Positions 5,901 through 52,839 of a DNA stretch of 64,000 nucleotides are shown in pieces; positions within the stretch are counted from its first letter, which is position 1, and the number at the start of each line of letters is the position of its first letter. Made by a program: the position numbers and the translations under genes. Source of the DNA: Ylistrum balloti (lineage: Eukaryota); assembly GCF_031769215.1 (NCBI RefSeq), contig NW_026782138.1:434001-498000 (forward strand), written 5' to 3'. A model generated the notes under the pieces. It did not search any database. It worked only from the letters and a program-made list of their open reading frames with translations, and was not told where the DNA came from.

Positions 5901-7677
5901 AGGTGCCACTGGGTGCTGGAATTGCCTTGGCCTTGAAGTACTATAAGCCTTGATAATAGAAGTTTGTAAACCCAAGTCTTTAACTTTAGACTAATCTTCC
6001 TGTCTGATATATAGGTGCCACTGGGTGCTGGGATCGCTTTTGCCATGAAGTATCGTAAGCAGAAGAACATATGTGTGACCTTGTATGGAGACGGAGCAGC
6101 CAATCAAGGACAGCTGTTTGAGACATTTAACATGGCGAAGTTGTGGAACCTGCCTTGTGTATTTGTATGTGAGAATAACGGCTATGGCATGGGTACCAGT
6201 GCTGAACGAGCCTCAGCTTGTATTGATTACTACACCCGAGGTGATTATGTACCGGGCATAAAGGTAGGTGTGTTGGTGAGATTAGTGAAAGTCAAGCACT
6301 AAAGAGCCTGTATTCATCTCATCAATATTGTTGTCCTATGACATTTACTAGTAAACAAGGGAAATAACTTTCTGATATAGCCATTACTGTGTATTTGGCT
6401 TCAAGGGAAATAACTCTACTGAACTTATTATTGTTTAAGAAGAGACTAATCTTTTGGTCACGTTTATTAATCCTGATAAGAAATATTGATTTTGTTACCA
6501 TTCAATTTGAACTCCATGTTAACATTTGATTCTTACACAGTCACTGTTGTTTGTAAATACATGTATTGTCATATATTCAATCTGGATACATTACTGATTT
6601 AACCAAAGTAAAATTAAGAGGATGTCGTTTGCAATATATTGAGTTTTTTTTTCTTTTTGTGAAACTCAGTGTGACGGTATGGATGTACTAGCGGTACGCG
6701 AGGCTATGATATTCTGTAAAGACTATGCCCTGAAGAACGGCCCAATCCTTCTGGAAGTAGCCACATATAGATACGGTGGTCACAGTATGAGTGACCCTGG
6801 TACAAGGTCAGTCTTGGGACAGTGTGATTTACGGAAAAGGTTCTGCTCAGACTTTTAAGGATAGTGACAAGAGCTAATTTAGCAAAAAAGAAAAAATTGA
6901 AATTTGATGTTCTGTATTGAATTTAATGAAAGTTTCTCTGTTCATCTTTTTATCTCTTTATCTCATGTAAGCTGTTTTTGACAATCAATACTGGGGCTAA
7001 ATGCAATAAAAGATATGACAAATATAGTCATATGATCATAAGTACACTGTGACAGAATTAGTCACATCATCATAAGCAAGGTATGATAATATGGTCATCT
7101 CTAAAATGTGACAGATGCTCAAGACATAATTATGGACAGATATGGTCATACTATATAAATTTGTCATCACAGCTACCGCAGTCGAGAGGAGGTGAAGAAA
7201 GTACGTGAGAAGAAAGACCCCATCACCACATTCAAGGAAAAGTTACTGTCATCTAATCTGGCTACTGCTGAAGAACTCAAGGTATGTATGTTAACAAATC
7301 CATCATTTAGGTAGGAAGCATATGTATAAATATATATCAGCATAATTTATCTCCATAAGTGATGTTTAAAAATATTCAGATTGTCAGTGCCGAAAAATTT
7401 TCAACACCAGTAAATTAACCTGAGAAACAAATCGGTGTTAAAGACCAAACAAATTAACCATTTGTACAAGGAAACCGATGCCTTGATTTTTTTTGCTCTG
7501 TTGCTTTTACAGAAAATAGATACTGAGGTTCGCAAGGAAGTGGAAGAAGCAGCAGAGATTGCAAAAAGTGACACAGAAATTTCTGCAGATTTTCTGTACA
7601 ATCAGATTTATTACCAACCCCCAGCAGATTATACAGTACGTGGTTGTGATCCTATGACAACTGCACCCTCAAAGTAA
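2998..7677 (+). CDS. PDHA1: Pyruvate dehydrogenase E1 component subunit alpha, mitochondrial (5' partial). Exons: 2998-3066, 3428-3601, 4071-4197, 5069-5160, 6015-6263, 6670-6806, 7173-7281, 7513-7677
   Basis: All introns are GT-AG and phases are consistent. The translation contains [44 protein letters not shown], the ThDP motif [14 protein letters not shown], and the phospho-loop [16 protein letters not shown]; stop TAA at 7675-7677. The start-codon exon was not found. Exon 2998-3066 is less certain than the rest. Confidence 0.97.
3590..3795 (+). repeat. ~32-bp degenerate tandem repeat (about 7 copies) starting at a PDHA1 exon 3' end and donor
   Basis: YTGGACAG(G/A)TATAAA-type cores at about 3594, 3625, 3657, 3689, 3721, 3753 and 3787. 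Confidence 0.85.
5815..6062 (+). repeat. 112-bp local duplication of a PDHA1 acceptor site plus exon start
   Basis: CTTCCTGTCTGATATATAG|GTGCCACTGGGTGCTGG occurs with exon starts at 5903 and 6015; a third degenerate remnant lies near 5815. Confidence 0.9.
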
Positions 7678-19249: not shown

Positions 19250-21480
19250 GTCAGTAGATACAGGTGTAATGTAACTTGTCAGTAGATACAGGTGTAATGT
19301 AACTTGTCAGTAGATACAGGTGTAATGTAACTTGTCAGTAGATACAGGTGTAATGTAACTTGTCTGTAGATACAGGTGTAATGTAACTTGTCAGTAGATA
19401 CAGGTGTAATGTAACTTGTCTGTAGATACAGGTGTAATGTAACTTGTCTGTAGATACAGGTGTAATGTAACTTGTCAGTAGATACAGGTGTAATGTAACT
19501 TGTCAGTAGATACAGGTGTAATGTAACTTGTCAGTAGATACAAGTGTAATGTAACTTGTCAGTAGATACAGGTGTAATGTAACTAGTTAGTAGATACAGG
19601 TGTAATGTAACTTGTCAGTAGATACAGGTGTAATGTAACTTGTCAGTAGATACAGGTGTAATGTAACTTGTCAGTAGATACAGGTGCAATGTAACTTGTC
19701 AGTAGATACATGTGTAATGTAACTTGTCAGTAGATACAAATGTAATGTAACTTGTCTGTAGATATAGGTGTAATGTAACTTGTCTGTAAATACAGGTGTA
19801 ATGTGACTTGTCAGTAGATAAGGTGTAATGTAACTTGTCAGTAGATACAGGTGTAATGTAACTTGTCAGTAGATACATGTGTAATGTAACTTGTCAGTAG
19901 ATACAGGTGTAATGTAACTTGTCAGTAGATACAGGTGTAATGTAACTTGTCTGTAGATACAGGTGTAATGTAACTTGTTAGTAGATACAGGTGTAATGTA
20001 ACTTGTCAGTAGATACAGGTGTATTGCAACTTGTCTTTAGATACAGGTGTAATGTAACTTGTCAGTAGATACATGTGTAATGTAGCCTGTCAGTTGATAC
20101 AGGTGTAATGTAACTTGTCAGTAGATACAGGTATATGTAACTCGTCAGTAGATACAGGTGTAATGTAACTTGTTTTTAGATACAGGTGTAATGTAGCCTG
20201 TCAGTAGATACAGGTGTATTGTAACTTGTCTGTAGATACAGGTGTAATGTAACTTGTCAGTAGATACAGGTGTAATGTAACTTGTCAGTAGATACATGTG
20301 TAATGTAGCCTGTCAGTAGATACAGGTGTAATATAACTCGTCAGTAGATACAGGTGTAATGTAACTTGTCAGTAGATACAGGTGTATTGTAACTTGTCTA
20401 TAGATACAGGTGTAATGTAACTTGCCAGTAGATACAGGTGTAATGTAACTTGTCTGTAGGTACAGGTGTAATGTAACTTGTCAGTAGATACATGTGTAAT
20501 GTAGCCTGTCAGTAGATACAGGTGTAATGTAACTCGTCAGTAAATACAGGTGTAATGTAACTTGTTTTTAGATACAGGTGTAATATACCCTGTTAGTAGA
20601 TACAGGTGTAATGTAACTTGTCTATAGATACAGGTGTAATGTAGCTTGTCAGTAGATACAGGTGTAATGTAACTCGTCAGTAGATACAGGTGTAATGTAA
20701 CTTGTTTTTAGATACAGGTGTAATGTAGCCTTTATACAGGTGTAATGTAACTTGTCAGTAGATACAGGTGTAATGTAGCCTGTCAGTAGATACAGGTGTA
20801 ATGTAACTTGTCTTTAGATACAGGTGTAATGTAGCCTATTACTAGATACAGGTGTAATGTAACTTGTCAGTAGATACAGGTGTATTGTAACTTGTCTGTA
20901 ATACAGGTGTAATGTAACTTGCCAGTAGATACAGGTGTAATGTAACTTGTCTGTAGATACAGGTGTAATGTAACTTGTCAGTAGATACATGTGTAATGTA
21001 GCCTGTCAGTAGATACAGGTGTAATGTAACTCGTCAGTAAATACAGGTGTAATGTAACTTGTTTTTAGATACAGGTGTAATATAGCCTGTTAGTAGATAC
21101 AGGTGTAATGTAACTTGTCTATAGATACAGGTGTAATGTAGCCTGTCAGTAGATACAGGTGTAATGTAACTTGTCAATAGATACAGGTGTAATGTAACTT
21201 GTTAGTAGATACAAGTGTCATAGAACTTGTCTTTAGATACAGGTGTAATGTAACTTGTCAGTAGATACAGGTGTAATTTAGCCTGTCAGTAGATACAGGT
21301 GTAATGTAGCACGTCTGTAGAAACAGGTGTAATGTAACTTGTCTGTAGATACAGGTGTAATGCAACTTGTCAGTAGATACAGGTGTAATTTAGCCTGTCA
21401 GTAGATACAGGTGTAATGTAGCACGTCTGTAGAAACAGGTGTAATGTAACTTGTTAGTAGATACAAGTTTGTTGTAACTT
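19250..21480. repeat. 28-bp minisatellite (about 80 units), GTCAGTAGATACAGGTGTAATGTAACTT
   Basis: Directly visible tandem units. Confidence 0.97.
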
Positions 21481-21714
21481 ATTGACAGAAACGTTATATA
21501 AACCCTCTGTAGATACAGGTGTATTCTGACTCAACTCGTCTTTGTCTGCAGATACAGATGTTACGTCACTCGACTGTAAACAAAGGTGTGTTGTAACTCG
21601 CCTATATACAGAGGTGTACCGAAACTCATCTGTAAATAAGAGTGTACTATGACTCGGTTGTAGATACAGATGTACTTTTCCTCGTCAATCGATACAGGGT
21701 ATGTATCGTGACTC

Positions 21715-22735
21715 ATCTGTAGATACAGGTGAATCGTGACTCGTCTGTAGATACAGGGTGAATCGTGACTCGTCTGTAGTTACAGGGTAAATCGTGACTC
21801 GTCTGTAGATACAGGGTGAATCGTGACTCGTTTGTAGATACAGGGTGAATCGTGACTCGTCTGTAGATACAGGGTGAATTGTTACTCGTCTGTAGATACA
21901 GAGTGAATCGTGACTCGTCTGTTGATACAGGGTGAATTGTGACTCGTCTGTAGATACAGGGTGAATCGTGACTCGTTTGTAGATACAGGGTGAATTGTGA
22001 CTCGTCTGTAGATACAGGGTGAATTGTGACTCGTTTGTAGATACAGAGTGAATCGTGACTCGTCTGTTGATACAGGGTGAATCGTGACTCGTTTGTAGAT
22101 ACAGGGTGAATTGTGACTCGTCTGTAGATACAGGGTGAATCGTGACTCGTTTGTAGATACAGGGTGAATTGTGACTCGTCTGTAGATACAGGGTGAATCG
22201 TGACTCGTTTGTAGATACAGGGTGAATTGTGACTCGTCTGTAGATACAGGGTGAATCGTGACTCGTCTGTAGATACAGAGTGAATCGTGACTCGTCTGTT
22301 GATACAGGGTGAATCGTGACTCGTTTGTAGATACAGGGTGAATTGTGACTCGTCTGTAGATACAGGGTGAATCGTGACTCGTTTGTAGATACAGGGTGAA
22401 TTGTGACTCGTCTGTAGATACAGGGTGAATCGTGACTCGTTTGTAGATACAGGGTGAATTGTGACTCGTTTGTAGATACAGGGTGAATCGTGACTCGTCT
22501 GTTGATACAGGGTGAATCGTGACTCGTCTGTAGATACAGAGTGAATCGTGACTCGTCTGTTGATACAGGGTGAATCGTGACTCGTTTGTAGATACAGGGT
22601 GAATTGTGACTCGTCTGTAGATACAGGGTGAATCGTGACTCGTTTGTAGATACAGGGTGAATTGTGACTCGTCTGTAGATACAGGGTGAATCGCGACTCG
22701 TTTGTAGATACAGGGTGAATTGTGACTAGTCTGTA
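21715..22735. repeat. 29-bp minisatellite (about 35 units), GTCTGTAGATACAGGGTGAATCGTGACTC
   Basis: Directly visible; joined to the 28-bp array by degenerate intermediate units at 21480-21715. Confidence 0.97.
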
Positions 22736-25100
22736 GAAAAAAGTGTACTGTAACTAATCAGTGTATACAGGAATATTGTAAATTCTTGTTAATAGATACT
22801 GGTGCAATGAAAGGCCAATAGTAGAGATGTGATCTTTGTGTACAGAAATACAAGTACACTGTAACTGGTCTTTTTATACACCTGGCTGTCCACGCGGTGA
22901 TCCATCCACTAACAAAATCACCATATATACCTCATTTTCTATATTCCTGTGTCTTGTGATCTCCGCTGGATAAGAGAAACTTCATGTTTAACTGCATGGG
23001 CTTGAGACTGGGGATAAACGCTGTTAGACGTAAGGAATTAGTGCTTTATATGGTGTTAATAGACATGTTGTCATATACTTCACTGTAATGACAATGTGCA
23101 AAATCTGGGTTTTAATTTTTCGGTTGTATCAATGTACACCACAACAGTTACAATATACTTGTGTTAAGGGTCAGTTCCGACATTAATGAAAGTTTTCATT
23201 AAAAAAAGTTTCACAGCAAATTATGCTGTAATTACCTAGAGTAATACTTTACATCAAGGAAAGAAATCATAACAACATAATCTTCATTTTTTTATTATTA
23301 AAATCAATGATACAAATTAATCCTCATTCAAAGACTTGAATGAAAAAAATTAGTGTTTTGTTGTAGAAAAAAGCATGATATATACATGTATATGTACATG
23401 ATGTAAATAACATGATATCTATAAAAAGTTAAGATTTATAATGACTAGCCCTACACTGATCAACCCCATTATTGTCATTATCAATTGAAGGATAACAAAA
23501 TTCTATCTCTCAAAATCAAGACAAAAATTTACCAGTTTTTTTTTTTTTTGCAGCAAAATTAATTCCAAAACAATTGTAAAAATATATGGTACAGTAAAAC
23601 TTGTATCCCAACAAAAAGTAAAAAAAAAGTTGACGGGACAAAAAAATGGCTTATTAGAAAAAAAAACTTTTCATTCAATAAATTATTTATTATAAATGTA
23701 CTATGATTTCCGGGTAATTTCAAGGTAGATAACTCTAGAAGTAGTAATGGGCTATCACAATTTAGACTGCATGTAGACACGACTCCACAACACACTTTCT
23801 CAGCACTCTTATGATGATTTGTTATTTTCAGTAATAAACATTTATCACATACTCACTATATCAATACAATTTTAGTATGTAATATATCCCTCCCTCCTCA
23901 ACAGAAACCTTTCAGAACAATCTGTAGTCTATTTCTTCTCAAACTCATTCACATGACAGGACCATACCAGAGTAAATAAGACACTGATTAAATTTATTAA
24001 CGCTCCTATATCCACGTTTTAAGTTCTATGTAAATTATGCCCACTGAATGCCTAATCCTGATATTTACAGCAAAGCTTCCCCATGATGCAATGTAAAGCA
24101 GTGATACCAAAATGAGAATGTCTTTATTTTTAACTACAGAGCAATATGTAATCTCATATTCAATACATGTTCCAATAGTGTTGTTACTGATGGTATCAAC
24201 TCTGTAAAATTATGAATATATTTAAGTGTCACATGTTCTTAATATCGCTGAACGAACTGGTATAAGAAAAGGTATCAACACGCCAAGAGCTTTATCTTTT
24301 AAAAGAAAAAGTTTTAATTCCTAATTCTTAAATCCATAAATTTATATACAAAAAAACATCTCTTTTTCATTCTAATTATTTCCCCCCGTGATATTCTATC
24401 TGATAATAATCTTCCCATTAATTCTTAATCTTGAATTGTGAGAATAGATAATCTTGATATTTCCTCTCTGAAACTGTCCTATTTCAAATAAAATATCTAA
24501 TGATGAAATGATAAATGAACGATGGAGTTATTGCTTTGAGCTATGATTTTACAAAAATATATACATACATTTTACCTATTTACAATATATACAACTTTTT
24601 ACAATTGGATTAGACATATTGCAATCAAGATACAAAATATCACATTTGCATAGAAAATTTGTATCCTAGTTTAAAATATACTCGATACATGTACCATTCT
24701 CTCACATGCATGCACACACACTCTCTTCTTTTAACATCCACTATGATTTAGGATTAAGTGTTGACAGAATGCATGTTTTGTACACAAAAAGTTCTCTTAT
24801 GAATTTGTATAATTTGCATTTCCATCCTTACATTTAACAAGCTTTCAGTTATTTGTGTAACATCAAACTTCTGATATATTTTGAAAGTATTTCTAAAAGA
24901 TAGTTTGGATTTTGGTAATCATTTAAAAAGAGAACTCTACATGAAAAGAAAAAGCACTTCTGATGAAAATACCATAAAGATACATATTTCAGTGTAAAGA
25001 AGATCTGTTTTCAGTATGGCACTTTTACATGGACTCATTTTGTAGTGCTGTAGAAATGTTCCTGAATTGAAAGAAGCCTGTAGTATTGTCGAATCAGCAT

Positions 25101-28100
25101 CTACCGTCGCTTTAGGAAGAAGAAGGCGAGTACAGATCCTGTAACTAAGGCCCAGTTGGCAACAATGGAAGCAGCACCAGCTATACGACACTTCAGAGTC
25201 CCGAACCTAAAATACAGAAACAATGATTTATAATGGCCATGATCCTGTTAAGTTTGAGAACGATACACTGCATTCAAGAATAATTGTTGACTTTGAATGG
25301 TTTTATGCTGAATATCATCACAAGTGTGACAGAATGTCAATTTTTAAAACAAATGGCAGGTGCTTTCATCTGTTCATACGCTACAGTATGATTATCTACT
25401 GAAATACAATACATGTTTAAGCGAGGGGAAAAAATGGTATCTTCTAGTACAAAATTTGAAGTTGTTCAATTAACCACAGCATAATTTTAAAATCACCCTA
25501 TTATTCATACAAAGCTTCTGAAATCATACCAAATAGGTAGAGACTTACTGGTATGTAATGGCCTACACACTAACAACACTAAGTATAACATGACCCTAAT
25601 CAACCTTGACACAAAAATATTTACTTCCCAGATATTCTAAAGGAGAACAATATATCTCACTGTGAAAGTTCTACATTGATGGCATTATAATCATTACATC
25701 AATTACAGCCATTTATATATTTTTATCACAACTTCCATGTTTTAGCATTTCTACCCCCCAAAATAATTACCTGTTCGGTTTTCCTGCCAATTTCTTTGAA
25801 TACTCTTCCTCCATAGTTTGACCATCATAGAACCAGGCAAGGTCATTAAATGGATATTCGTATCCTTGACGACATTCACATTTGTAGGAACCAGTTTGGA
25901 ATCTTTTCCCAGGAAGGGGAATACACTACAATGATTTTTGCGAAAAAGAATATATTATACATTTCAAATTCTAAAAATATACAATTCATCCAAATTGCAC
26001 ACAAAATTTTACATTTTTTTGTTTTCCTCTGGACTTTTTATCACAATGAATAGGCATTTTTAAAAATGAATCAGAATATTCACAGCCAAATCCACCAAAC
26101 AAGCCTTTGTTAAAAAAAAAAAAAAAACAAGAAACATTAAAACAAACCAACAACAAACCTTTCAATGCTTATTCAATCTCAATGAAAGTTTATGTTCAAA
26201 ACACTTTTTTGTCCCAAGTATGAAAACACCTCCACCTCAAAAGCTTAGTGATGAGCGCTCCGGCATTCATCTTTGCCACCAGAGAATACTCACAAGCAAT
26301 GTAAGGTGAGTATTCCGCCAGTGCCAAGGACGACTGACCAGAAATCTGTTTCAGATGACATCCTGACAAGACTCCATCGACTTGTAAATGAATGCCTTTA
26401 TACCACGATGAATAAGTATGTCCCAGTTCAAAGTTAACCCAATACCAAACCATTATCATCACTGAAACCAGCAAGCTTTGTGATTCTCTACTTCACACCA
26501 AGACAAAAAAACATATCCGAGTTAAAAGTTAACCCGAGATCAGACCACTTTAATCACTGAAACCAGTAAGGTATGCAGTACTAAATGTATGACTGAATTT
26601 AAGTCAATGACAACTGCCTTCAAGGAAACCAAGAGACATTGACCATGTATGTTCATTTGTTTCCTCCTGCCAATCAGATCCTTTCACCAGATCAAGACAC
26701 TCTTTCACCAACAAATCACAGCAAAATGATACTTGATATCAAACAATCCTTTTCAGGGTAAACAGCTATATATAGCATTCAATATTATAAACCAACAGGC
26801 TGGAAGGTGTGGACAAGCATCAGATAAACACAAAAATCTAACCACACTGAAATTTATAACCACACTTAAACTTACAAATCAAGACATTCCATGATAAAGC
26901 ATAAGAAATAATGAAACACAAATAAAAATTATGAAAAGGATATGTTGTCCATATCAGAGAGAATGATTTTCTTTTTGTTTTATATTTTACTTACGTAAGT
27001 TGATTTGAAGTCGCACTTGGCTGTATTTTTGAAAGCGTTGGCTACATAGAAGTCCTGTGGACACTGATTTATGTCTAGATAATCCAACTTGACATCAACT
27101 TTAACTACTCCTCTGCAAAATTAAATTTACAATTAGTATTTTTTACAGTATATGATTTATTAAAAAGTCACTTATTTATTTTATTATATCCCATCTATCT
27201 GTAGAGAGTCTATCCATTTACACTGGACCTCTAACAAATCCTTCAAAGTTTTCTTTCGTACATAAGATATGAAATGTGCTACATAAGAACTAACATTCCC
27301 TTGACATTCATTCTACTCGACACCCATCTTAAGTGCGATTTTACAAAATTCTACAATGAAAAGCAGTACACGAGTTGAAAGTTTTTTTACCATTATTAGC
27401 AAAGATTTACTTTTGATTATTTGAAATTGTCTGACATGATTTGCTCATCAAATATTCAATAAATTCAAAGATATTGTAACAATGCTTTTTTCATTAACAT
27501 CAAAAGTTATTTCATTTTGACAATTCAAATTCTTACTTGAATTCAAGCATGGTTTTCAATTCATTAAATCCAAAGAAAGGAACCACGTAAGTAACCACCC
27601 AGTCCATGATGCGGTCATCACACTTGAACTCAGGCCTCAGCCATTCACCATGTTCATACTTTGGAGCATAGTACTGGATGGGATAGTACTCAAATCTGAC
27701 CAGACTAGTACCATTCACATCTGACCTCACCATGGGTTTGGCTGTGTACTTGACAAGACTATGGAAATTGGTCTGCCATCTTGCCTTTACAGTTCTGTAC
27801 CAGACCTCGTCTGTGTAGAAGTTAGAGTATCCAGCAGAGTCTACAGCAAAAAACTCATCTAAACCATCACCAGTCTTGGTTTGCTTCCTCCATGAGTATG
27901 GGCCAAAGAACTCTCTCACTATTCCATTGTTGTATCGTGGATCAGTATTATTTATTGGTGGAGACATGCGGAATTTGTAGCGCTCAAAGAAAACACCACT
28001 GCCAAGGATTCTGAAGTCTGCCATGACATTGGCAAGAACTTCTCCAAACAAATGTGTTTCATTCAGACGTCGGTCACCAGTCATACTACCAAAATTCTCG

Positions 28101-31100
28101 TACTCATCGACATTCTGCAAGAAGTCCGACAGGAAGTGTGCTAAACGAACTGCTGTACGTCCTTGTGCCTCAAATTGTTTCTCAACACCATAGGCAACAT
28201 CTCCTGGGAGGAAAAGTTCATGTGGCATTTTGGTTTTACAGTTTGCAGCATTAGTTTGAGCTTTTCTTAACAAAATCTTGTCCATTTTAACTCTCTTTTC
28301 CGCATCAAACAGATCCCGTTTATTCCTAATTTTTTTACTTTGTCCATCATATCTCGGAACATGTCGACGATTTCTGAGTTTTTCTTTCATCTTATCCTTT
28401 GGAACAGATCTTCTGGCTACTAATTTTGCTCTAGGACTCTGACCCGATGTAATGATCTTAAATAAGGTGGATTTCTTAGTTATTAGTGTTGATCTCTTTC
28501 TTCTCCTTTGCACAAATGTGGGCATTTCATTCGGAATCACCTGAAGCTCTGTAATTAAGACAAAATGGTCCTTTTAGTGTGTAACTCTCTCTGAATATTG
28601 TCATTATTAGTTGTAACAGATGAATTTAGAAACTTAAAATATTAACACAGAATGAAACTCAAAATTGTACCTTTTCGAATGTAGAAGCAGTTTCATCATA
28701 TCATTGTAATCTGCATCACAAAGTCAGATAAAAAATGTCTTCCAACAAGAATGTCCTTACCAATTCAATTATTTACATTTTATTATAAACACTAATTGGT
28801 AACCTCCCAAGGACAGACATGGTAACTGCTTATCACTATGTACCCCCAGAGCATGACAGGGATTAACATTAAAAGGAATTTGTAATCGGACTATGTTAAC
28901 TATAAAGATCTTTATAAGATTCTTAAATTTCTTCACTAATTTTTGTATTTAAGACAAAAAAATCACAACCATTCCAGTTATAACAAGTTGACAGTATCAA
29001 TGCTATTTCTTATTAAAACTAAACAGCAATATTTTTTTACCTTCCACAGGTAGGCAATCAAAGTTATTCATGTATTCATCTTCTGTCGCGATCTCAATCT
29101 CGTCTCCCAGGAAAGGCCCACCATGCCACCAGGGAAAGTAGTAGCCAGGTCGACACACACACTGGTAGCCACCCCGTCGGAATCCATAACCATTCAACGG
29201 CTCACACTGAAATAGAAAATGGTTGTTTTGATATACAAGTAAAAATGTGGCATACAATGATAAAATTGTACTTGTCACAACTGAAACATTACAACATAAC
29301 ATTAGTGTTAAGTTTTTCCAATTTAAATGTCTTTTTTTAAACATTCTTAAACAGTGAACGAATACATTAAATACCTAATCTATCTTCTTGGCTTGAAACA
29401 AGTCTTGTAATAATTTATAATATGTACTGGTTAGAAATATGTTTAATCATGTCTGTTTCTAAACTTTCAGTGAAAAATCAGGATTATGTACATGAGTAGA
29501 CTGATTTTTTTAAAATCTAAATTGATTACCTCTCTCTTGATCTGCCCAGATATAGCAAGATATATATGGATGTCATGTGACCATATATAGGAATTCAGAT
29601 AATATCTTTAGTGAAATTACAAAATATAGCAATGTAGTACTGCAACATATTTTATGTAAAAGGAACTGAGGATGAAGCGATGGAAATTGCTCTACATGCC
29701 TTGACCAGCAACTTCTTGATCCAAGAGTGTTCTACCTATACCAGGGTTCTGTAAATTTTGTGTCAACATATTGCATGTTCAATGTTAACTTATTTATTCA
29801 TGGAACAATTCAGAACACTTGATCGGACAAAAACATACTGATGAGTCATGTTTAATTCGGTCTCACGATGTTAATGTTATTTCATCATACATAGCTAGCA
29901 TGTTATTTTCCACAATATAACTGTACTCCTGAGTATTTTTACTAGCCTTACACAAGATTGCATATTAAGGAAGTGTCAGGATGAAGCAAATTCCATTTCT
30001 TAAAAGACGGGAATCATAAACAGCCACACCCTTGTTCCGGATATAAACGCATGTTTTAAAGACTTGTCGTTGGATAATAGTATTTACAAATTAAATACAC
30101 GTATCTTTATTCGCCAGCAAATCGTCATTATGTGTCACTTTATGTTAATACACAAGATTTAGAAATATGTAATGCCTAACATTGTACTAGAGAAACCAGT
30201 GCTCACGGTGAACATCCTGTTCTTCCTCTCATCTCAAGCCTCTGCCAATATAGGCTTGTCGAAGAGTTTACACGCACTGTCGGTATAATTTAGCATTAGC
30301 AAACAAAAGAAACATCTAAATTTTGGTCTTAAAACGATTCAAGGCAATGTTTCATGACAACACACGTTTTCCACGATGTTCATCTCACCTTCTGTCCAAA
30401 CTATATGACCACGCTGCATTTGGCGGGTGTTCAGCGTCGTCACGAATAATATGATCGTGGTCACCTAAACGTTTACTCAGCTAGGCACTTCTATTGGGGC
30501 CCAAAACAGGGGAATCATGCGGATTGTCTCTATCATATCCCTTTCATACACCATTACCTTTTTATCCCACTTAAACTAATAGGGTACTGATGCGGTTTAC
30601 TAGACAATTTAAATTCACAATTTAAGTTGTCGCTATTCATATTTCACTCACATCTTAACTTGCATTTGATCAAATCAATATTGGTTCATTCAGATAAATG
30701 CAAAGCTAATATTGATGCGTCAAAGTATAGTAAAACAAGTACGACATTAATTCTGTCAAAGGACATAGGACACGGTTATATCATGATTTTTTTTTCTAGA
30801 ACACAAATAAAACGTTTCATAGAATTGTTTAGAAAGGAAAGCGAGTGCTCATAAATGAAATCAAGAATAAAAATTTCTAGTAAATTGTTAAAACTGAGAC
30901 TGTCAGACCCATACAAGAATTAGGCGCAAATATGTCTCGCTTCGTTGGTTAGATTATTATTTTTCTGCGAAAAATGTAAAACAAACAAAAATTCATAAAA
31001 CCCACCTGCAAAATAAATGTCCCTCAGTCTAATCAATAACCAAAGATATGCTGTTGTCATGATTCAATCATTATATATCAATTTTTTTTCTAATATAAAT

Positions 31101-34100: not shown

Positions 34101-37100
34101 TGGCAGAGCTTTCCTACTTATTTTGTGGATTTTTTTAATGGTGGTCCCTATATTGCATTTCCTGATTGTCTCAACATACACAAGTATTTTTCACCGTTGT
34201 CCAAACAGGTCTACGTTGTCAGCTGTCCTAGTTAGCCATACGATCTACGATCTTAAGATTTTCCTCTACATGTCCTTTTGGAATAGTTGTTTTAAAAACT
34301 GTTAATCGAACAGGTAAAATACTCTATGAATTTCCCAAACCTACACAATATAAACTTTCTCTTTTTCGTCATTTTATCGATTCCTAAATATCAAGTATCT
34401 TACTTCAGTTTGTTGGTTTTATTTGACTCGTAACGAACATGTGTAAGACTTCATGAATTTACCGATTCCTATATATAAGTAGTTTAACTCTGTTCACGTT
34501 TACTAAACTCATAACGTACCACATTTCATTCATCTCTTGTAGCTTCCAATTTAGTTACTTTCAAGATTACTGACGCCGTCAAACGACATCATATTTCACA
34601 AGTAATTTTACCGATACCACACTTAAGTATCAAGTACTTAAGTATTTAAGCCCAAGTACTCTATCTGTAGTAACTTACAAAAACCATTTCTTAATGTAAA
34701 ACCATCCATATTTAAAGTGTTTGCTATTGGATAACAACAACGTTGTGGCCGTGAGTATGTACAAGCCATAAAAAAACTAGACAGAGACTTCATTGTACCT
34801 GCTGTCTACATTGCGTGATCGTAAGAGGCGGTTAATCTTGGAATCTTTAAAGTATACTTTCCTATTTCTAATGACATTTTCCTTTTTAATCTCTCTCATG
34901 ACACTATTTCACATTTGCCCTTTCTCATGAATGTCCGTCCTGGTGAATAAGGCTATGCGTTATCCTCCCAAGCCGTGACATGCCAAAACGAAAATGGTAC
35001 TTCGCACTTTTTGCTTGAAGATCACCTTTGAGCGGTTACATATCACAAAACCAATACTGATATATATGAAAAACGAATACAGCTCGTTGATAGCGTGAAA
35101 ACTAGTATACATGTAGTGTCACCATTAAAAAAGTGTATGATGGTGACATTGTTGTAATGTTTTTTGCCAAAATAGATCATGTACTCGTTGTACCTCAGGT
35201 GATATAGAGGACGAATTTCACTTTATCCTAAAATGTCCTTTTTACCAAAATCTGAGACGTAAATAAATCAAACAATTCTGTTACAGAAGTCCAAATGTTT
35301 TTAAGTTTACGATATTACTGAGCACCAATAATGTAAAAGAATTATGTAATTTTGGGAAATATTTATATCAGGCCTCAAGGAAACGCATAGAATTTAGTGA
35401 TTGATAGAGCTAATTGTACACTACAGTATCATTGTAAGCTTACTCTCCATTTAACCTAATTTGTATAACATTCTTTCATATTTGTACCACATTATGTAAT
35501 TATGTCTATATTATTTAACCTATGAGTCGGATGGCTCACGGAAAAATAAAATGATTGAATGAATGAGCTAGTACAATCAGAAGTTTAATTGGATTTGTGA
35601 CGTCCTAGTAATACAATAGGAATAATGTCATGTGACCAAAAATGAACGGGAACAGTAGTCATACAATTGGTCTCGACTCTAACATAGTGCAGTAAACTTT
35701 TGTTCGTAAACATAACTAATGGAATGAAATATTGCTGACAAATGTGTTGGAGTGCACGTGGTGGAAATGTTTAGCCAAGGTAGTCGCTATATTATTTAAC
35801 ATATACTGTTTCCCCCTGCAAGGGGATATTATGCATGCACATGCTCCCTTCTCTGTCGTCAAAGGTGGTACTATAATGAGGGACAAGGAATGCTTACCAT
35901 GGTGGTAGGTTTACACCTAGCGGTATCTTTGAAGTAGTTAGGGTCGGGATTTCCTTCACTCTTGGGGCAGGGGTTGAAGTCGATCCTCTCAAACTCTATA
36001 TCCTGGGTCACCACCGCCACAAACCTGCAAGACAAGGTGTCAGAATAATGTATACCACAACATTTATGTTTATAAAACGACATTGCCTTACAAAAATAAG
36101 TGTCAGGACAAAACTTCGGAGGGTAACAGGCAGATATTAACTAGTACTTCAGTAATAAATGCGGGGCTTAGATATAAGTTTGTTTTTCGGTTTGTACTTA
36201 TGACTTTACTCTTGGATCAGAACTTTGATTTAGAGAAAATATCTCAAATAAAATTGGACAAATTTTGACGAATTCTGACAAAAAAATCAGTAGATATGGA
36301 ATCTTTACACGTGTTTGAAGTAGATATCTGATACTAGTAAATTTACCTAGGTCTTCGGAGATGGGTCCAGTTGGAGTATCTAGGCATATATTCGACTACT
36401 GGTGAATGAGCGCTGACGATCCACCTGTTGGATCGGCCACAGTCGAAGTACGGCATGGTCCATTCGACCGGGAGGGACACATCTCTGTCTGATTGTCCGG
36501 GTTGGGGAGGCCCGAAAAAATCGATTCCCTCGAACTCCTTATGAGTAAATTGTTTTGTGGCGTTGGAAAACTTCACGTTCACAAAATAGGTAAACTTCCG
36601 GAGAGAGTCTTGACTCTTGTCGTTATCCGGGAGCCATGCAGAGTACCATGGGGCGGCTTTGTAAGCATCACTTGTGTAATTTTTCATCGTTCCAGCTCCA
36701 TAGTCATGAATGTCCACAGTATTGTTAGTAGGCTCTCGTAACCAATTCGTCGGTTCATTATAATCATCCGTTCTCCACGCGCGAGGTCCAAACAGGGGAA
36801 GTGTTTTGTTGAATTCCACGCCATTGTAGAGGTACCATTGAGGGTAATTACAATGATTGTCAAAGTACATAGCAGAACCGTTTATAAACCCTTGACTTCC
36901 AGTTACATCGGCGGTGGCGGCCATATAGAGATACTGAAGACCTGGCTGGTTCATAAAATCCTCTGATCTGTTCTGTCTTTGGTATATGAAACTGTAGAAA
37001 AAGGCTCGATTGAGAGCCATGTTGTGCAGGTGTAGTAGTTGGGATCTATTTGAATATATTACGGTACTCAGTAACATATTGTACCGTGGTAACTGTGAAA

Positions 37101-37302
37101 CAGTTTCCATGGGAAGCCGGAGCTTCTCTTTGGGTTTAGACCTACAGTTATCGGCAGTAACAGAGGACATTCTGTCCATAATTTCATCGAATCGGTCCTC
37201 TGCCAACCAGTGGAAAACGCCCGATTGTGAGACACTTCCGCACCATGACGCGTAAAGAGTCAGAGTTAGTCCAACGAATATGATATGCATATACAAACCC
37301 AT
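25101..37302 (-). CDS. Uncharacterised 879-aa protein with two GPR158/GPR179-like extracellular (Cache + EGF-like) modules and a C-terminal anchor, no 7TM. Exons: 37302-36347, 36024-35898, 29206-29041, 28548-27537, 27112-26995, 25925-25771, 25206-25101
   Basis: Seven GT-AG exons total 2640 nt in one frame, with an N-terminal hydrophobic signal peptide. Motifs WTMPYFDC..WIVS, EFKGVVKVDVKLDYLDINQC, FKNTAKC..CIPLPGKRFQTGSYKCECRQGY and GYGFRRGGYQCVCRPGYYFP parallel the recalled GPR158 ectodomain (WSPPYLEC, EFRGVMKVDINLQKVDIDQC, FSGTHKC..CMPIKGLGFVLGAYECICKAGF). The protein ends ..GAASIVANWALVTGSVLAFFFLKRR*. The gene structure is firmer than the family assignment. Confidence 0.92.
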
Positions 37303-39921: not shown

Positions 39922-40049
39922 NNNNNNNNNNNNNNNNNNNNNNNNNNNNNNNNNNNNNNNNNNNNNNNNNNNNNNNNNNNNNNNNNNNNNNNNNNNNNNN
40001 NNNNNNNNNNNNNNNNNNNNNNNNNNNNNNNNNNNNNNNNNNNNNNNNN
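39922..40049. other. Assembly gap (128 N)
   Basis: Run of n characters. Confidence 1.
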
Positions 40050-41849
40050 ACAGTATATGTGTGTGTATGCTGTATTTTATTTAAACAGTCCATCTTGTTT
40101 TATTTATATTGTAAAATATTGACGAGAAAGGGGCTTATTGAGATTCGATATCTTGTTGGTGATCCTAATAGTATATCAGATGTCACATTAGTTTTCACAT
40201 TGTCAGCCCCCAAAGTCTGTTCAGCTTACCACTGTACCTACTCTGTACTGACAGAATGAAACGAATGACAGTAAATCTGGGAGATCAACACGTGGTTTGG
40301 GGACAAATGCTGTTATTTTTAACAGTTATAGAATAATTAACCACGATAGACTTCCTGAGTTTCGGGTCGAGCAGAATTAATTGTTTGCATCGTCAAATTG
40401 TAAAAATTCGGCGATGATTTTGAAAATTGAAATAAAAATTAGATCAAATAAGATGATACCTGTATTACCATCAGACATATTGACTACATCAGTGATTACC
40501 TTCGTAAACACCCAAGGGATATTTTACTTTTCGACAATATAATTATTTGAGATCACATGCATTGTTTTTGTATATGCTTCGTGTTGCCTAGATTCATGCC
40601 AAGCTCCTATAACAGAAATCAACCAAATACATATGCACTTTTTATTGCACGTGCTTTGCATTTAAAACGAAGGTGGGTGCGTGTTGTTCAGGGTCACGTG
40701 ACACCATACAAACCAGTCGATAAAATTGACTTTCGTCCAGTTTTGACGTGCTGTTCGGTCGATCGGAACAAAGTAGATAGAGAGGCAATGCCTGTCTCTG
40801 CCTTGAACTGTCACTTCTACGTAAGTACTACTGGGATGTTACTAAAATACAGAGGTTATTTATACATAGATATATAACATAAGACATATGATTATTATTT
40901 TAACTCAAAGTGAAATCAAAAGTTAAACCAGCATCTTCCAGTCACCTCCTAGGTCCCAACGTTATACAGACCGTTAGCACTTACGTGAGTTGTAGAAGGA
41001 CGAAACGTCTATATGGTACAGTTTGTAAGGAATATTGACACTTTTTAGTATTAACAAATATACGTTTTTAGTGGTAAAATATCATGTGGTATGATGTCAT
41101 GACTCCATTCTGAATTATTTGAATACTGATAAGACAATCACTGTCGTTTTATTACATCGGATCTTTCTTCTTCAGTAATACTGTGGAGATTTCACAAGTA
41201 ACGTCATTTTGATTAATATCATACATGTCCAGTACCATCTTCCTCTCGAACCCTACACTATAGCTATAAAGACACGTTATATGTGATAACTATATTGAGC
41301 TCTATTTCCAAAATTTGTAGATTTTTTTTAATATGAAAAATTCAATAGTGATGTAGGCAACGGCAAACCTACAATAAAATGTTTGTTTTTTGTAAAAAAA
41401 AAATACAACAAAAACAGATACGTTTACGTGTGGTTTCAAGTGGCCAAATTGACCGTAAATTGCAACACTGTTAAAATAGAAGCAGCAAGGGTCAGTATAC
41501 ACCTGTAATAAGTTCTCAGGCCCCTGTGTTTTGGACAAGGTAAATGGCGATCTGGAACTAATTAAGATTATCTAGAAATTAACAAATCGGCGTACCGACT
41601 AAATAGGGAAAGGCTCTTGTTATCCAATTCTTTAATAAAGTTAACAGAGAGAAACTCGGAACAACTACAGACTGACCAGCCCAACGTTAATGACATAAAA
41701 AAACTGCAACGACTTACAGAGATGAAATATTTAAACACAATTTAAACACAAGGATGACAGCGAGTGGCTTGTTTTACACCAAAACTTTTTCAGACCTGAC
41801 GGAACACAGTTCATGTTTCTCGCTGGGGACGTTTGATGTAGATGTTGTG

Positions 41850-44837: not shown

Positions 44838-47800
44838 ATGACTTCACCAAACTCTGAATCTAACCCACTGGACATGTCTGGTAAGTATATATCAAAGATA
44901 TTCATTTTGGAAGGAAAGTTATGATACATTGCTAATGATTTCAATTGATCAAAAAGAGTAAATGGGGTATAGTAAAAATTGTTGAAGCATCGTAAAAACA
45001 GTATTGTGAACATGTACATACTAAGCTTTACTCTTGCTTTTAGTTGTGTGTACCATAATTAGCTAAATTTAATGGATTTGGGCATGCTTTGCATAGTTAA
45101 ATATAGCTATTAAAGTGGAATAATACTAAAATAGTGTAATCAGGACTTCTTATCCTCTCTGTATTAGATTTTAGTCTATATGATGAGATGACCATTAAAT
45201 GAAAGTCTGGTCACCTCATGTCCAAGATACAGGAATATAAATCTATGCTGTGTATTTAGTGAAATGAATTTTGCCACCCTTGTCACATGTCTTCATGATT
45301 TAACATTGCATGCATGTGTTTTGACTCCATTTTCAAGGGAAGTAAGGTTTTATTCCCTGATGTCTGAGGAAACCCAAGCTGAGTCTGTAAACTTGTATAT
45401 AAGATATGGGTATGATGTAGAGACCTGAACCCAAACAATAGAAATTGGATGATAGAATAGCCAATCATTTTACATCTACTTGTTGTGTATGGTCAGTGTA
45501 GTCATACATATAAATGTATTAGTTTCCATCATGACTCTACATTGTGGTGTAGGTGTTGTCATTTCCAGATAACCACCTCCTCTGGACTTTGCTTTCCAAA
45601 AGCATAATCACCCATCTACTGACATATATATATAGTTTGTTATAAATAACATGTAAAACTTTCTATTTTAGCCCCAGGAGGGCAGATTTCTGCCTCATTG
45701 ACTCTTCCACAGGGAATGGGGCTCCAGACTATGCCGATAATGTTGTCAGTCAGCCTTCCTGAAAAGGACAAAGGAGATAACAAAATGGGTATATAAATAC
45801 ATATTTTTTGACACTTGTAAAAGCTCTTTTTTAATATGTCCAACTTATAGACACTTGATGAAAGGAATTTTTCAGTTACCCTTGACAGGAAATCATCATT
45901 TTTTCCCGGTGTGAGATTTACTTTTCTCACCCCAGGTTTGAGACCGCTATACATGCTCTTTGCACATTCTGAAAACGGCTTAAGTGACGTTACCTGAAAG
46001 TGGAACTACTTTTATGTAGTCACAATTACTCTAGTTGGTCTGCTACTGAAGTCTTGTATTATCCTCAAAACTGAAAATCCTGTGTTATCAAGATTGAAAT
46101 TTATTTATATCAAACATAAATATGTTAAAATAAGAGTATTTTTGATTTGGTGTCTTATTGTCAAGTATAACAGAATTAGTTTTTGTGTAAGATTAAATCA
46201 CAATGCTTTAAGTGTATTGAGCTGTGAACCTTGTCACTATTCATTAGCCATCCACATGTTTTTGTTTGAAGTTCATCTTACACTGGGACATGGAAAACAG
46301 TGTAAAAAGAAAATAATCATTCACTCCCTTTAGGATGAGATAGAGGGATTCCAACCCTAGGGGGGAGATTATGAAGCTATCAAACACTCAACAAATCTTG
46401 TGTTTGACAACTTAATAATCTTCTCCCTCGGGCGGAGATTTCCTAAAGGGGGTGAACGATTCTATTATTCTCTTCTGATAGAAAGTCCTATCATTAAAGG
46501 TGTTTGGTTGATGAGTTGTATATGTGTAAACCTTAACTTGAATGCAGTTGTAAATTTAATTCTTTTTTATATTTCTATCTATCAGACCATAAATTTCAAT
46601 GTGGAAAAAACCCCACTTCAACACTTTACTAAAAAATTTTGCTTATGCAGTACAGCAGTTGACAAATTCTCAAGTTGTACCAGAGGCACATACACATTGC
46701 TGTATTTTACTATTTCATTTCATGTATTGTTTGGAGAAATATGTGGTTGTTGTATCATATTTTTGTAACATCATTTAGGTGTTTTGCCCCCTGTACTGCA
46801 GTTAATCCAGCAGAGTGGATTACAAACGCTATCGCAGATCTTTCCACAAGCTGCACCACCTCTGACTAATTCCTCTCAAGCCACGTCTATCCAGGATTAT
46901 ACTACACCCAGTCCAGCCCATCCTAATGTGGAGACAGACTTGTCAGAAGCCTCACTAAAACCACCAGCCAAACCTGCATTTGATCTGTCATCCTTCCTCA
47001 AACTACAAAATCCAAATGATTTAGTGTCAATTCAGAATCGAATATCCCTTGCTAACAATTCGCTCAATAGCCTTGCTAATGTAGTACAAGAGTCAACCAA
47101 TTCCCAAGTGTTACCACAGACACAGACTCTGACCAGTGCCACTGAACAGGGCAGTGATAACAGACAGAATGATGTTGTTCATCCGTCATCTTCACTTTCC
47201 TCCTCTGAGGCACCTGCAGTTCTACAAAACCTGTCTGTACATGATGCAATAGCAGTTCATCTTGGTGGTAATGAGTTTACTAGGCCTGACCTCATAAGCC
47301 CACATCTGGAAGCCCTAGTGTCTAATGCTACATTCATCCAGCAGTGTGGCAATCAGGACCTGGCCAGTGGTCAGTATGCAACCAATGCAGCCCCTCAACT
47401 CACCATTCATCAGTCAGCTGATGCCCTTCAGACGCATGGACAACATGCAGGAGAACCTCTGATGTCTGTAGGTGATCAGTGCCAAATGCCTTCTGATTTA
47501 CAAAGCTCAACATTGCAGTCCAACATTCAGAACCAGATGTTGTGTTCAAGCACAGCTCTGGGCCATCAAACAGATGGGACAGAGTTGTCCTCTCAACATG
47601 TAGAGACATCACAGTTGACACAGAACCACATGGAGGACATTAGTCTCAACACTCAGCAGAAGTGTAATGATGTAGCCATTGGAAATGAGATGACAGTAGG
47701 TAAATATCTGATGAAGTTCCTGGTGATTCCCTGAAAATTACTTCAGAGTGATAGCATTTAAGATTCTTTTTTTTTTTTTTTAACTTTTAATATATTTGTG

Positions 47801-50800: not shown

Positions 50801-52839
50801 ATGGTGCTCCCTGTAAATATAATATCTATTGCATTGATATGCTAATGATTATGATCGACTTTGCAATTGGAGTTTTTTTGGGGGGAAAAGGCAGATTTTA
50901 GTGTATTTTGCTGTTTGCTTTAAAATACCATATTCACAAAGGAGGCTAGACGAGACAATTATTTGTGTTTTTTGTCGAGGAATGTACATCTTTTTATCCT
51001 ACAATATCTTCAGTGAATTAATAAATACTAGTAGAAAAATAAAATTTTATGTTGTCAGTGTTTCTGTGAAGGTTACAAATTTAGGGCACATCTGAATGTA
51101 GAAATGGATGGCAGAAAAACATTTCTATAAAATAGTGTATTACATTGTAGGTGATCTACAGTGACAAGGTAGACCAGTATGACCTTGAGGATGAACAGGA
51201 GTGTAACTGGCTCAAGTTTGTACAAATGGCACGTACAGAGGCCTCCCAGAACATGGTTGTCACACAGTTAGGTTCTGAGATATACTTCTTCACCACAAAA
51301 CAGGTTTATCCTGGTGAAGAGTTACTTTTCTGGTACTCCAAGGACTACGCTCGTTTTCTAGGTACAATGTTTTTTTTTAGCTGCTGGAATCATGTCCCTT
51401 CAGTAACATTACATATATATTCGTCACTGCATTGATGACTCCTGATAATTCTGTAGTATACTGCATTGAGGAGACAACAATCTTTTGACAGTTAATTAAC
51501 AATATTATTTTTTGATCTGGAAAAATATGTGATTATTTTGCATTGACATACAGTAGAATGTTAATTTCAGATATGTTTTATGTTAAAGGAGTGCCTGTAA
51601 GTCCAGAGACCAAGAAAATCAAAATGTGTTACGTATGTGGTAAAGTGTTTGTGGGCCGTCTAAACCTGCGAGCTCACCAGAAACTCCTACATGCGGATGT
51701 GGTGAAAAGGAAGTGGAACTGTAACATGTGTGAACAGGGATTCACATCCTCTGCTAAACTGAATGACCACATGAATATTCATATGGGGATCAAGCCTCAT
51801 ACATGTCAATACTGTGGGAAGCGGTTCACAGACCAAAGTAATCTCAGACAACATCTGCTCACCCACAGTAGTAAGTCACAAAATAATTCTCAGTAAACAA
51901 CCTTAAACAAGAGAGGAAACTACTCCTGTGATTTTTCATTGGGAAAGAGAAACAAACACTGTATGTGGAAAATATTGTAAAACTTGTAAAGCAAATTGAT
52001 AATTGGCTGTAAGTATAGTAAAGAAGTACTATATTTACAGCCACAATAATCAATTAGCTTTACAAGTTTTATTGTTTTACTAAGAACAATTCCTCTAAAG
52101 ACATACTGCTGCACAATTAAAATTATTATGGTTTTATCATGAGGTAGAATCTTTTGTTTATTCAGGTTGAAATTATGAATAACGGCAAAAACAAACTTAC
52201 ACAGATCACTGGTATATCCACTGTGATATCAATAGCGATCTTAATACTAACATGTTAAAGGTTTTTATTTATTTTCTTTTAAAGTGCAAGGTTTTTCTGT
52301 AGATGTATGCATTTTGTTTTAATATTTTGATTTGAGATGTAATTTAGAGAGATTTGTTTTTTCTGGACTGTTTTGTAGATGTGAAGAGGTTTTCCTGTAC
52401 CCAGTGTGGAAATCAGTTCCGACAGAAGATCCATCTGCAGACCCACATGTTAACACATACAGGAGAGAAAAATCTGCAGTGTAACTTCTGCGTAAAAAAA
52501 TTTGCCCGTGAATCTGATCGCAAACAGCATCAGTATCAACACACAAAGGAGAAGATCTACCAGTGTCTTGAGTGCAACAAAATATTCTACAAACTTCAGA
52601 ACTATAAACGGCATGCACTTATGCATACTGGGGAGAAGAATCATGCCTGCCCGAAATGTCAGAAGCGGTTCTATACCAAATACCACCTACAGCGACACTC
52701 TAAAATCTGTAAAGGAGCAACAACAAAAATCTATCTCAACAAACATGAGAAAAATCTCAACTTGGAAGAAATAGCTAATGAATTAACAGCAGGTCCCTCT
52801 GCTTCCAGGACATTAGGAACCAACACTGCTACTCCGTAG
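44838..52839 (+). CDS. PRDM4: PR-domain zinc finger protein 4-like (886 aa). Exons: 44838-44880, 45672-45788, 46779-47699, 48077-48292, 48721-48855, 49305-49466, 50473-50585, 51151-51361, 51589-51870, 52379-52839
   Basis: Phase-consistent GT-AG model of 2661 nt. It has a low-complexity Q/S/T-rich N-terminus, a zinc knuckle CVGC..CLIH, and a PR/SET domain (TRARASLP, FGPLVG, CNWLKFVQMAR..QNM, EELLFWYSKDY). Seven fingers follow, including KRKWNCNMC..HMGIKPH and a terminal TKYHLQRHSKICKG, as in recalled PRDM4 (ERKWKCSMC, TKYHLTRHLKTCKG). The two 5'-most exons are less certain. Confidence 0.93.
46321..46456. mobile_element. Foldback/MITE-like palindromic element in a PRDM4 intron
   Basis: Outer IR TCACTCCCTTTAGGA / TCCTAAAGGGGGTGA (14/15) and inner IR AGATTATGAAGCTATCAAACAC / GTGTTTGACAACTTAATAATCT (19/22) with a 12-nt loop. 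Confidence 0.6.
49405..50055 (+). repeat. Degenerate 60-90-bp tandem repeat (about 8-9 copies) of a PRDM4 exon 3' end plus donor
   Basis: CTACCTGAAA..CAGAGACAATACTTCAGAATGTTATAG-like units continue from the true exon end at 49466 into the intron. Confidence 0.85.
51979..52070. other. 92-nt near-perfect hairpin in the last coding intron of PRDM4
   Basis: AAAACTTGTAAAGCAAATTGATAATTGGCTGTAAGTATAGTA, loop AAGAAG, then TACTATATTTACAGCCACAATAATCAATTAGCTTTACAAGTTTT; ATTGT on both flanks. Confidence 0.75.

Follow-up and report, generated by a model that had tools for sequence, protein, structure and literature searches.

A 64,000-nucleotide stretch of the genome of the scallop Ylistrum balloti (NCBI RefSeq assembly GCF_031769215.1, contig NW_026782138.1, positions 434,001 to 498,000 of the forward strand; hereafter the window, numbered from its first letter) carries on its minus strand a gene for a predicted secreted, probably glycosylphosphatidylinositol (GPI)-anchored, protein in which two modules of the GPR158/GPR179 ectodomain type stand in tandem. 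A basic, disordered linker joins the modules, and it is probably excised at two furin-type motifs, leaving a two-chain product. The analysis establishes the motifs, the conservation of their positions, the predicted disorder between them, the continuity of the transcript in relatives and the convertase genes of the genome; we infer the cleavage, the fate of the chains and the GPI anchor. The single chain would fold with modules 1 and 2 packed helix to helix as a pseudo-dimer resembling the GPR158 homodimer. A furin-like convertase of the late secretory pathway would then cut the exposed linker at its two ends, and perhaps at an internal RR and RNRR, so that the linker would be freed as one or more spacer peptides. 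The mature product would be a non-covalent heterodimer of module 1 and module 2, held at the membrane by the lipid anchor of module 2, whose own N-terminus would be freed at the equivalent of the N-terminus that module 1 acquires after removal of the signal peptide.

The linker is encoded within a stop-free minus-strand frame (27536-28549) and extends over 28316-28507 on that strand, from the first Arg of RRRKR (site 1) to the last Arg of RNKR (site 2). A sequence-only reading of the window had described a very basic linker bracketed by furin sites, and translation of the minus strand reproduced the quoted string, both sites and an internal RNRR exactly. Site 1 lies 23-24 residues past the last Cys of EGF-like domain 1, and site 2 lies 26 residues ahead of the first Cys of module 2. 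RRKR↓S and RNKR↓D, as well as the internal RNRR↓H, have the R-x-K/R-R form with a permissive P1' residue that is expected of furin-type sites, and the internal A-R-R-S and RNRR are possible secondary cuts. The predicted excised stretch, that is, the interior plus RNKR, has 59 residues with 11 Lys, 9 Arg, 2 Asp and 1 Glu (net charge +17, pI 11.9). Taken alone, the window's segment of 109 residues from Cys to Cys contains three R-x-[KR]-R motifs, where shuffles that preserve composition give 0.52 (P ~0.01); over the whole family the excess is much greater. This segment, which consists of five exon 3 residues and the start of exon 4, was the sole piece of the window joined across exons, for the shuffle and the alignment. 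Full-length searches, fold prediction and complex prediction were carried out on the Argopecten irradians ortholog (P0046, 879 residues, named 'uncharacterized'), and the window was queried exon by exon.

The conservation of the sites was analyzed in 64 full-length homologs, 53 of which are non-arthropod, with the linker defined as the segment from the last Cys of EGF-like domain 1 to the first Cys of module 2. Of the R-x-[KR]-R motifs, 144 fall in the 7,932 linker residues and 9 in the 48,497 others, an enrichment of about 98-fold. In 44 of the 53 non-arthropod homologs, a motif is placed with its P1 Arg 26-27 residues ahead of the first Cys of module 2; after 2,000 shuffles of each linker, matches at this position averaged 0.34 and never exceeded 4. 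The total number of linker motifs was 143, compared with 21.9 ± 4.7 after shuffling. The sequence-only reading had named loss of the sites in orthologs as one result that would refute it, and the sites are kept. The linker around site 2 is unalignable between phyla, while the position of site 2 is unmoved, and site 1 is followed by Ser at P1' in 37 of the 53 homologs. In an alignment of 25 mollusc linkers of one clade (clade A) with that of the window (26 rows), conservation of 90% or more between the cuts is confined to columns of site 1 (K/R-R and then Ser) and site 2 (R-x-K-R), and the interior is variable between these fixed flanks. The linker of the leech Helobdella is charge-neutral (42 Lys or Arg, 40 Asp or Glu), yet it retains RKKR↓S and RMKR↓Q, which suggests that a cleavage signal rather than a charge patch is maintained.

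A tree built without the linker columns tracks species groups and reveals a mollusc-specific duplication. Both sites are present in mollusc clade A, to which the window's protein belongs, whereas clade B usually has site 2 alone. Two paralog loci in the same genome carry the motif at the homologous place, as RRRR↓S 30 residues and RRKR↓S 27 residues ahead of the Cys. The exons of these paralogs that encode the linker plus module 2 (G000:C987:92585-93310, L004; G000:C561:87131-87889, L005) resemble clade B and are without a site 1 of the window type. In arthropods, comprising 9 sequences of the first set and 114 further ones, mostly from insects, about 62 residues separate the two cysteines, and there is neither an insert nor a motif between the modules. 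The arthropod orthologs can therefore be regarded as a natural negative control. As a separate observation, about 10 of 16 annelid homologs (within P0072-P0089) have a Gly ahead of site 1, for example G-R-K-K-R↓S, which the scallop is without; after a cut and trimming of the basic residues, this Gly would be the C-terminal residue of module 1, a classical amidation signal.

The AlphaFold2 model of P0046, built from a 55-sequence alignment (mean pLDDT 86.7, pTM 0.84), has a single stretch with pLDDT below 50, at residues 429-491. Site 1 is situated at 431-435 and site 2 at 491-494, and the first helix of module 2 starts at 499, five residues past site 2. Because the sites are at the ends of the sole disordered stretch, a double cut would remove almost exactly the disordered part. 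The genome also encodes candidate enzymes: the convertase P-domain (PF01483) gave seven matches, all above the Pfam cut-off, at five or more loci by one count and six or more by another. For P0046 residues 26-435 and 495-856, the predicted complex has an ipSAE of 0.85 (best control 0.00), with run agreement of at least 68% of contacts and partner pLDDT of at least 81; solved complexes attained the mark set for this score in 51 of 78 cases, mismatched pairs in 2 of 108. The predicted interface is formed by the equivalent long helices of the two modules (84-137 and 540-595). The ectodomains of GPR158 form a non-covalent dimer via helices alpha4 and alpha5 that buries 1,806 square angstroms (PMC8611064). 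The scallop protein is thus probably a single-chain pseudo-dimer, the halves of which would stay together once the linker is removed. Processing had been proposed to yield a soluble module 1; the large helix-to-helix interface, the pTM of 0.84 and the likeness to the GPR158 dimer imply instead that module 1 is probably retained on the anchored module 2.

The continuity of the linker with both modules is evident in relatives. An Argopecten Logan contig (L003, run SRR19746221) of 2,885 nucleotides is intron-less and contains a complete open reading frame (ORF) of 879 residues, where the genomic gene covers 12.5 kb. In a Logan contig of 2,470 nucleotides from another mollusc (L001), a single ORF runs from EGF-like domain 1 through the linker and module 2 to the tail. 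More than 60 full-length proteins of 800-1000 residues from molluscs, annelids, a rotifer, a flatworm, a tardigrade and arthropods share the layout, and no separate signal peptide precedes module 2. When P0046 was compared with the window by tblastn, seven colinear minus-strand exons were recovered, six of them 91-100% identical and the short C-terminal tail exon 73.5% identical; the matches span 37302-36346, 36026-35898, 29206-29027, 28555-27536, 27114-26995, 25937-25770 and 25208-25107. The linker is part of exon 4 and has no exon of its own. Splicing of the exon 3 donor (…GAA G/gtaaaa) to the exon 4 acceptor (…ttacag/AG CTT) would preserve the reading frame and yield V-E-E-L-Q, the sequence also present in P0046.

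In the encoded protein, a signal peptide precedes module 1 (a Cache core followed by an EGF-like cysteine-rich part), the linker, module 2 with the same two parts, and a tail. Its hydrophobic N-terminus (helix 2-22 in the model) and its cysteine-rich domains of extracellular type are those of a protein of the secretory pathway. The Cache plus EGF-like ectodomain of the GPR158/179 receptors, which belong to class C, was recognized by Pfam, phmmer and Foldseek. Exon 3 scores 32.1 bits against PF22572 (GPR158_179_EC, cut-off 28.1), phmmer retrieved the GPR158 chains 7ewl and 7she (E ~3e-13) and GPR179 (E 1.7e-10), and the best Foldseek matches of the P0046 model were GPR179 8irj_A (E 4.5e-10), 8d1b_A and GPR158 7ewl, followed by bacterial dCache sensors. 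Exon 4 alone matched no Pfam family, its Cache core being too diverged for a one-exon query. By BLASTP, module 1 and module 2 share 23% identity (E 1e-4), and the start of module 2 is placed opposite the N-terminus of module 1 after the signal peptide (RFDEIMDRMSSVTADNC against KMDKILLRKAQTNAANC, E 1e-4), in agreement with the correspondence of N-termini noticed earlier. Each module has 8 conserved cysteines, and module 1 has an extra one, Cys151, in just 60% of sequences. An inter-module disulfide was considered and rejected, given that each module has its own 8 conserved cysteines, that Cys151 occurs in only 60% of sequences and that no conserved pair is evident.

The protein ends 28 residues past the last Cys of module 2 with a single hydrophobic tail, as in all full-length orthologs. 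This tail looks like a GPI-attachment signal and not like a transmembrane anchor followed by a cytoplasmic tail; the anchoring of module 2 proposed earlier would then depend on a GPI-like signal in place of a transmembrane helix. A seven-transmembrane (7TM) domain is absent from the protein, which has only this one hydrophobic C-terminal tail, and for this reason we do not class it as a G-protein-coupled receptor (GPCR).

Between the window and Argopecten, the linker has a nonsynonymous rate (dN) of 0.127 and a synonymous rate (dS) of about 2, which is saturated; the resulting ratio, about 0.06, exceeds that of the module 2 part, about 0.02. This ratio indicates that the linker is constrained within scallops. 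An island of the form [FH]-[VI]-P-R-[YF] with a preceding basic cluster recurs ahead of site 2 in molluscs and annelids; beyond this island, the alignment contains no linker peptide conserved across mollusc classes. Prohormones are recognized by conserved or repeated units between dibasic sites, often with a Gly signal for amidation. The interior of the linker is unconserved across mollusc classes, and a Gly-basic amidation signal (G-K/R-K/R) was not found in the linker of the window. The suggestion that excision might release a bioactive cationic peptide is not supported, as no peptide is conserved across molluscs, a Gly-Lys-Arg amidation signal is missing from the window's linker and the leech linker is not basic; a specific bioactive linker peptide is unlikely. 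A bolder variant, in which the spiralian protein doubles as a pro-peptide whose excision both matures the mimic of a Cache dimer and co-releases lineage-specific cationic signaling or antimicrobial peptides, is speculative, and we would not expect it to hold. If it were true, one gene would supply a receptor complex and an accompanying peptide in stoichiometric amounts.

Connecting segments between basic convertase sites are known from the C-peptide of proinsulin and the tetra-Arg linker of complement C3. As in the C-peptide, the segment in the scallop protein varies among lineages while its flanks are fixed, and the parts that it joins would, according to the model, stay together after excision. 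Unlike the short chains of insulin, the parts joined here are homologous receptor-type modules of about 400 residues, with no evident conserved disulfide between them; in place of simple dibasic pairs there are furin-type R-x-K/R-R sites, and arthropods show that the linker is dispensable for folding. The furin bracket proposed by the sequence-only reading is strongly supported by the comparison of homologs and by structure prediction, in the fixed flanking sites, the variable interior and the sole disordered stretch between them. Two-chain receptors matured by furin include the insulin and IGF1 receptors (RKRR site), Notch (S1) and Met. In these, too, an R-x-K/R-R motif is placed in an exposed loop of an ectodomain that passes through the secretory pathway, and an associated heterodimer is expected. 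However, they are cut once, release no peptide and signal across the membrane, whereas the scallop protein has neither a 7TM nor a kinase domain and has a GPI-like end.

Each module of the scallop protein has, like the ectodomains of vertebrate GPR158 (mGlyR) and GPR179, a Cache/PAS core and an EGF-like cysteine-rich part, and the contact predicted between the modules is made by two long helices, as in the GPR158 dimer (PMC8611064). They differ in that the scallop protein has no 7TM domain and has both protomers fused in one gene. Vertebrate GPR158 and GPR179 are not known to undergo convertase processing between protomers. The cysteine-rich linker of GPR158 alone is reported to have 5 disulfides (PMC8611064); a whole module of the scallop protein has only 8 conserved cysteines, and the region that matches this linker keeps 6. 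The closest Cache-domain analogue of the proposed maturation is the alpha2delta subunit of calcium channels, an extracellular protein made as a one-chain precursor with a lipid-anchored part. Cutting of its single chain yields a large outer part that remains associated with the lipid-anchored one, and the cut serves as a maturation checkpoint (PMC5092059). This cut is made once, by ADAM17 and not by a convertase (PMC9016415). The alpha2delta protein has a VWA domain and bacterial-type Cache domains, its parts are disulfide-linked, and it is not homologous to the GPR158-type module pair.

Four other explanations of the linker were weighed. Site 2 alone might be used, in which case there would be one cut, the basic linker would stay as a C-terminal tail of module 1 and no discrete peptide would arise; such a tail might be trimmed by carboxypeptidases or serve in binding matrix or heparan sulfate. 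The universality of site 2, which is found in the tardigrade, the rotifer, the flatworm, annelids, both mollusc clades and both paralog loci, agrees with a single cut, as does the usual lack of site 1 in clade B. On the other hand, site 1 and its Ser are conserved in clade A as strongly as site 2, annelids and a rotifer also retain site 1, and in the model it is equally exposed at the opposite end of the disordered stretch, so that use of site 2 alone appears unlikely for the window's protein. The linker might also be an uncut, flexible polybasic tether or a patch for binding glycosaminoglycan, with R-x-K/R-R arising as a by-product of basic composition. The net charge of +17, basic clusters resembling heparin-binding motifs and the uncut tether of arthropods would fit this explanation, and the vertebrate receptors GPR158 and GPR179 have proteoglycan partners (for GPR179, the complex with pikachurin is 8d1b). 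It is nevertheless quite improbable, since composition yields 0.34 positional matches where 44 are observed and 21.9 motifs where 143 are observed, the charge-neutral linker of the leech has both sites, and the motifs are fixed to the domain borders while the interior drifts.

The dibasic sites of the linker (RRRKR, RR, RNRR and RNKR) are also what would be expected if it were a prohormone-like cassette, in which the flanked fragments are secreted as signaling or antimicrobial peptides and the modules are their carriers. The fragments would be strongly cationic, the [FH]-V-P-R-[YF] island is semi-conserved in molluscs and annelids, and the interior is under purifying selection between scallop genera. 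Against this, no fragment is conserved across mollusc classes, the linker of the window has no Gly-basic amidation signal, arthropods are without the linker even though their modules are 64-87% identical among the searched orthologs, mostly from insects, and the modules are much more conserved than the linker; we consider the cassette a poor candidate. Finally, the linker could be outside the mature protein if adjacent paralogous genes had been merged or an unspliced intron had been read through. Transcript support does come from relatives and not from this species, yet a single ORF in the intron-less contigs of relatives covers module 1, the linker and module 2, the junction of exons 3 and 4 is in phase, module 2 is without its own signal peptide and the layout recurs in more than 60 species, which makes an annotation artefact extremely improbable.

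Several points weigh against double excision as the preferred reading. Cleavage is a prediction in every species. The homologs that gave 44 positional matches are phylogenetically related, and the shuffle counts are not independent trials. The occurrence of site 2 alone in clade B and some other lineages suggests that excision, as opposed to one cut, is limited to some clades, and the short uncut tether of the arthropod orthologs implies that cutting is unnecessary for the fold. The constraint on the linker between scallop genera is, judged from the substitution rates, more than a pure spacer needs, and its basic clusters could alternatively bind glycosaminoglycan. The score of the predicted complex may reflect the model's memory of GPR158/179 dimers and measures likeness, not affinity. 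No RNA run turned up for the species; a single sequencing run of unknown kind gave no contig over 25050-29300, which is uninformative on expression and does not indicate a silent gene.

GPR158 has recently been recognized as a metabotropic glycine receptor whose ectodomain functions as a dimer, and protostomes have a strongly conserved protein that fuses two ectodomains of this type without a 7TM domain. The arthropod orthologs (P0126-P0243, mostly from insects) have about 800 residues and are 64-87% identical to a beetle query. Almost all database entries in the family have generic names ('uncharacterized', 'hypothetical' or 'GPR158/179 extracellular domain-containing'); a few are labeled by homology as 'GPR158' or 'G-protein coupled receptor', and a homolog from Elysia is apparently mislabeled as 'Fras1 related extracellular matrix protein'. 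These names reflect no tested function, and there seems to be no characterized member. A search of the literature for 7TM-less GPR158-type proteins, their convertase processing and invertebrate homologs found nothing on the family or its processing. The theme of a convertase linker is known, and this uncharacterized, widely conserved protostome protein is a new setting for it. If the linker is excised, Spiralia mature a single-chain dimer by a C-peptide-like step that arthropods dispense with, and the two groups would offer a natural comparison, with and without, of the effect of freeing the N-terminus of module 2. For the annotation of mollusc and annelid genomes, the mature product would probably be two chains plus a peptide. 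The coordinates of the gene and of the linker elements are listed in Table 1.

Table 1. Features of the tandem GPR158/179-type gene and of its linker in the window (exons 2, 3, 5 and 6 have approximate borders).
Feature	Position	Strand	Remarks
Site 1, RRRKR	28493..28507	-	Expected cut after final Arg; P1' Ser
Linker interior, STLITKK ... SKKI	28328..28492	-	Basic, predicted disordered; differs between mollusc classes
Internal dibasic, A-R-R-S	28406..28417	-	Aligns with (A)-K-R-S or N-R-K-R-R of other bivalves
Internal RNRR (R-x-R-R)	28364..28375	-	P1' His; directly before semi-conserved [FH]-[VI]-P-R-[YF]
Site 2, RNKR	28316..28327	-	Expected cut after final Arg; P1' Asp
Predicted neo-N-terminus of module 2, DLFDAE ... 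NC	28238..28315	-	Aligns with module 1 N-terminus after signal peptide (BLASTP)
Exon 1: start codon, signal peptide, module 1 Cache core	36346..37302	-	ORF; tblastn 95.6% against P0046 residues 1-319
Exon 2 (approximate): Cache core end, start of module 1 cysteine-rich part	35898..36026	-	tblastn 100% over 43 residues
Exon 3 (approximate): module 1 EGF-like/cysteine-rich part	29041..29206	-	PF22572; tblastn; ends ...DCLPVE, phase-1 donor G/gtaaaa
Exon 4: module 1 stalk end, linker, module 2 Cache core	27536..28548	-	Acceptor ...ttacag/AG; open frame; tblastn 91%
Exon 5 (approximate): module 2 counterpart of exon 2	26995..27114	-	tblastn 97.5%
Exon 6 (approximate): module 2 EGF-like part	25770..25937	-	tblastn 91%; open frame
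Exon 7: last Cys, small residues (A-G-A-A-S), ~20 hydrophobic residues, K-R-R, stop	25104..25208	-	Translation

Within the gene, a segment of the linker, RSVPKDKMKEKLRNRRHVPRYD (28352-28417), resembles a segment of module 1, RSKPKEKLRLPMETVSQLPRYN (37078-37143), which is located shortly past the first Cys of that module (both on the minus strand; 8/22, E 0.018). Homology was rejected as the cause of this similarity: the pairing breaks the colinearity of the module duplication, and the similarity probably reflects chance between Lys/Arg-rich sequences.

The window as a whole is AT-rich animal DNA with introns. Upstream of exon 1, at about 39930-40060, there are 128 N, which represent an assembly gap or masking. 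An open frame at 6015-6302 on the plus strand resembles pyruvate dehydrogenase E1-alpha and is probably an exon of a neighboring PDHA gene. Also on the plus strand, a Ser/Thr/Gln-rich exon precedes a PR/SET-like segment with several C2H2 zinc fingers (46784-47734 and 51151-52839), an arrangement that looks like a PRDM-type zinc-finger gene. Long tandem arrays occupy 19280-22760 and 58520-64000. The minisatellite array downstream of the gene is open in several minus-strand frames, with units of …VTIHPVSTDESRFTLYLQTSH…, and the array near the end of the window has units of about 3.9 kb with similar ORFs at 59163 and 63097. A minus-strand open frame at 718-1164 resembles reverse transcriptase (…YADDNAL…) and is probably a fragment of a non-LTR (long terminal repeat) retrotransposon.

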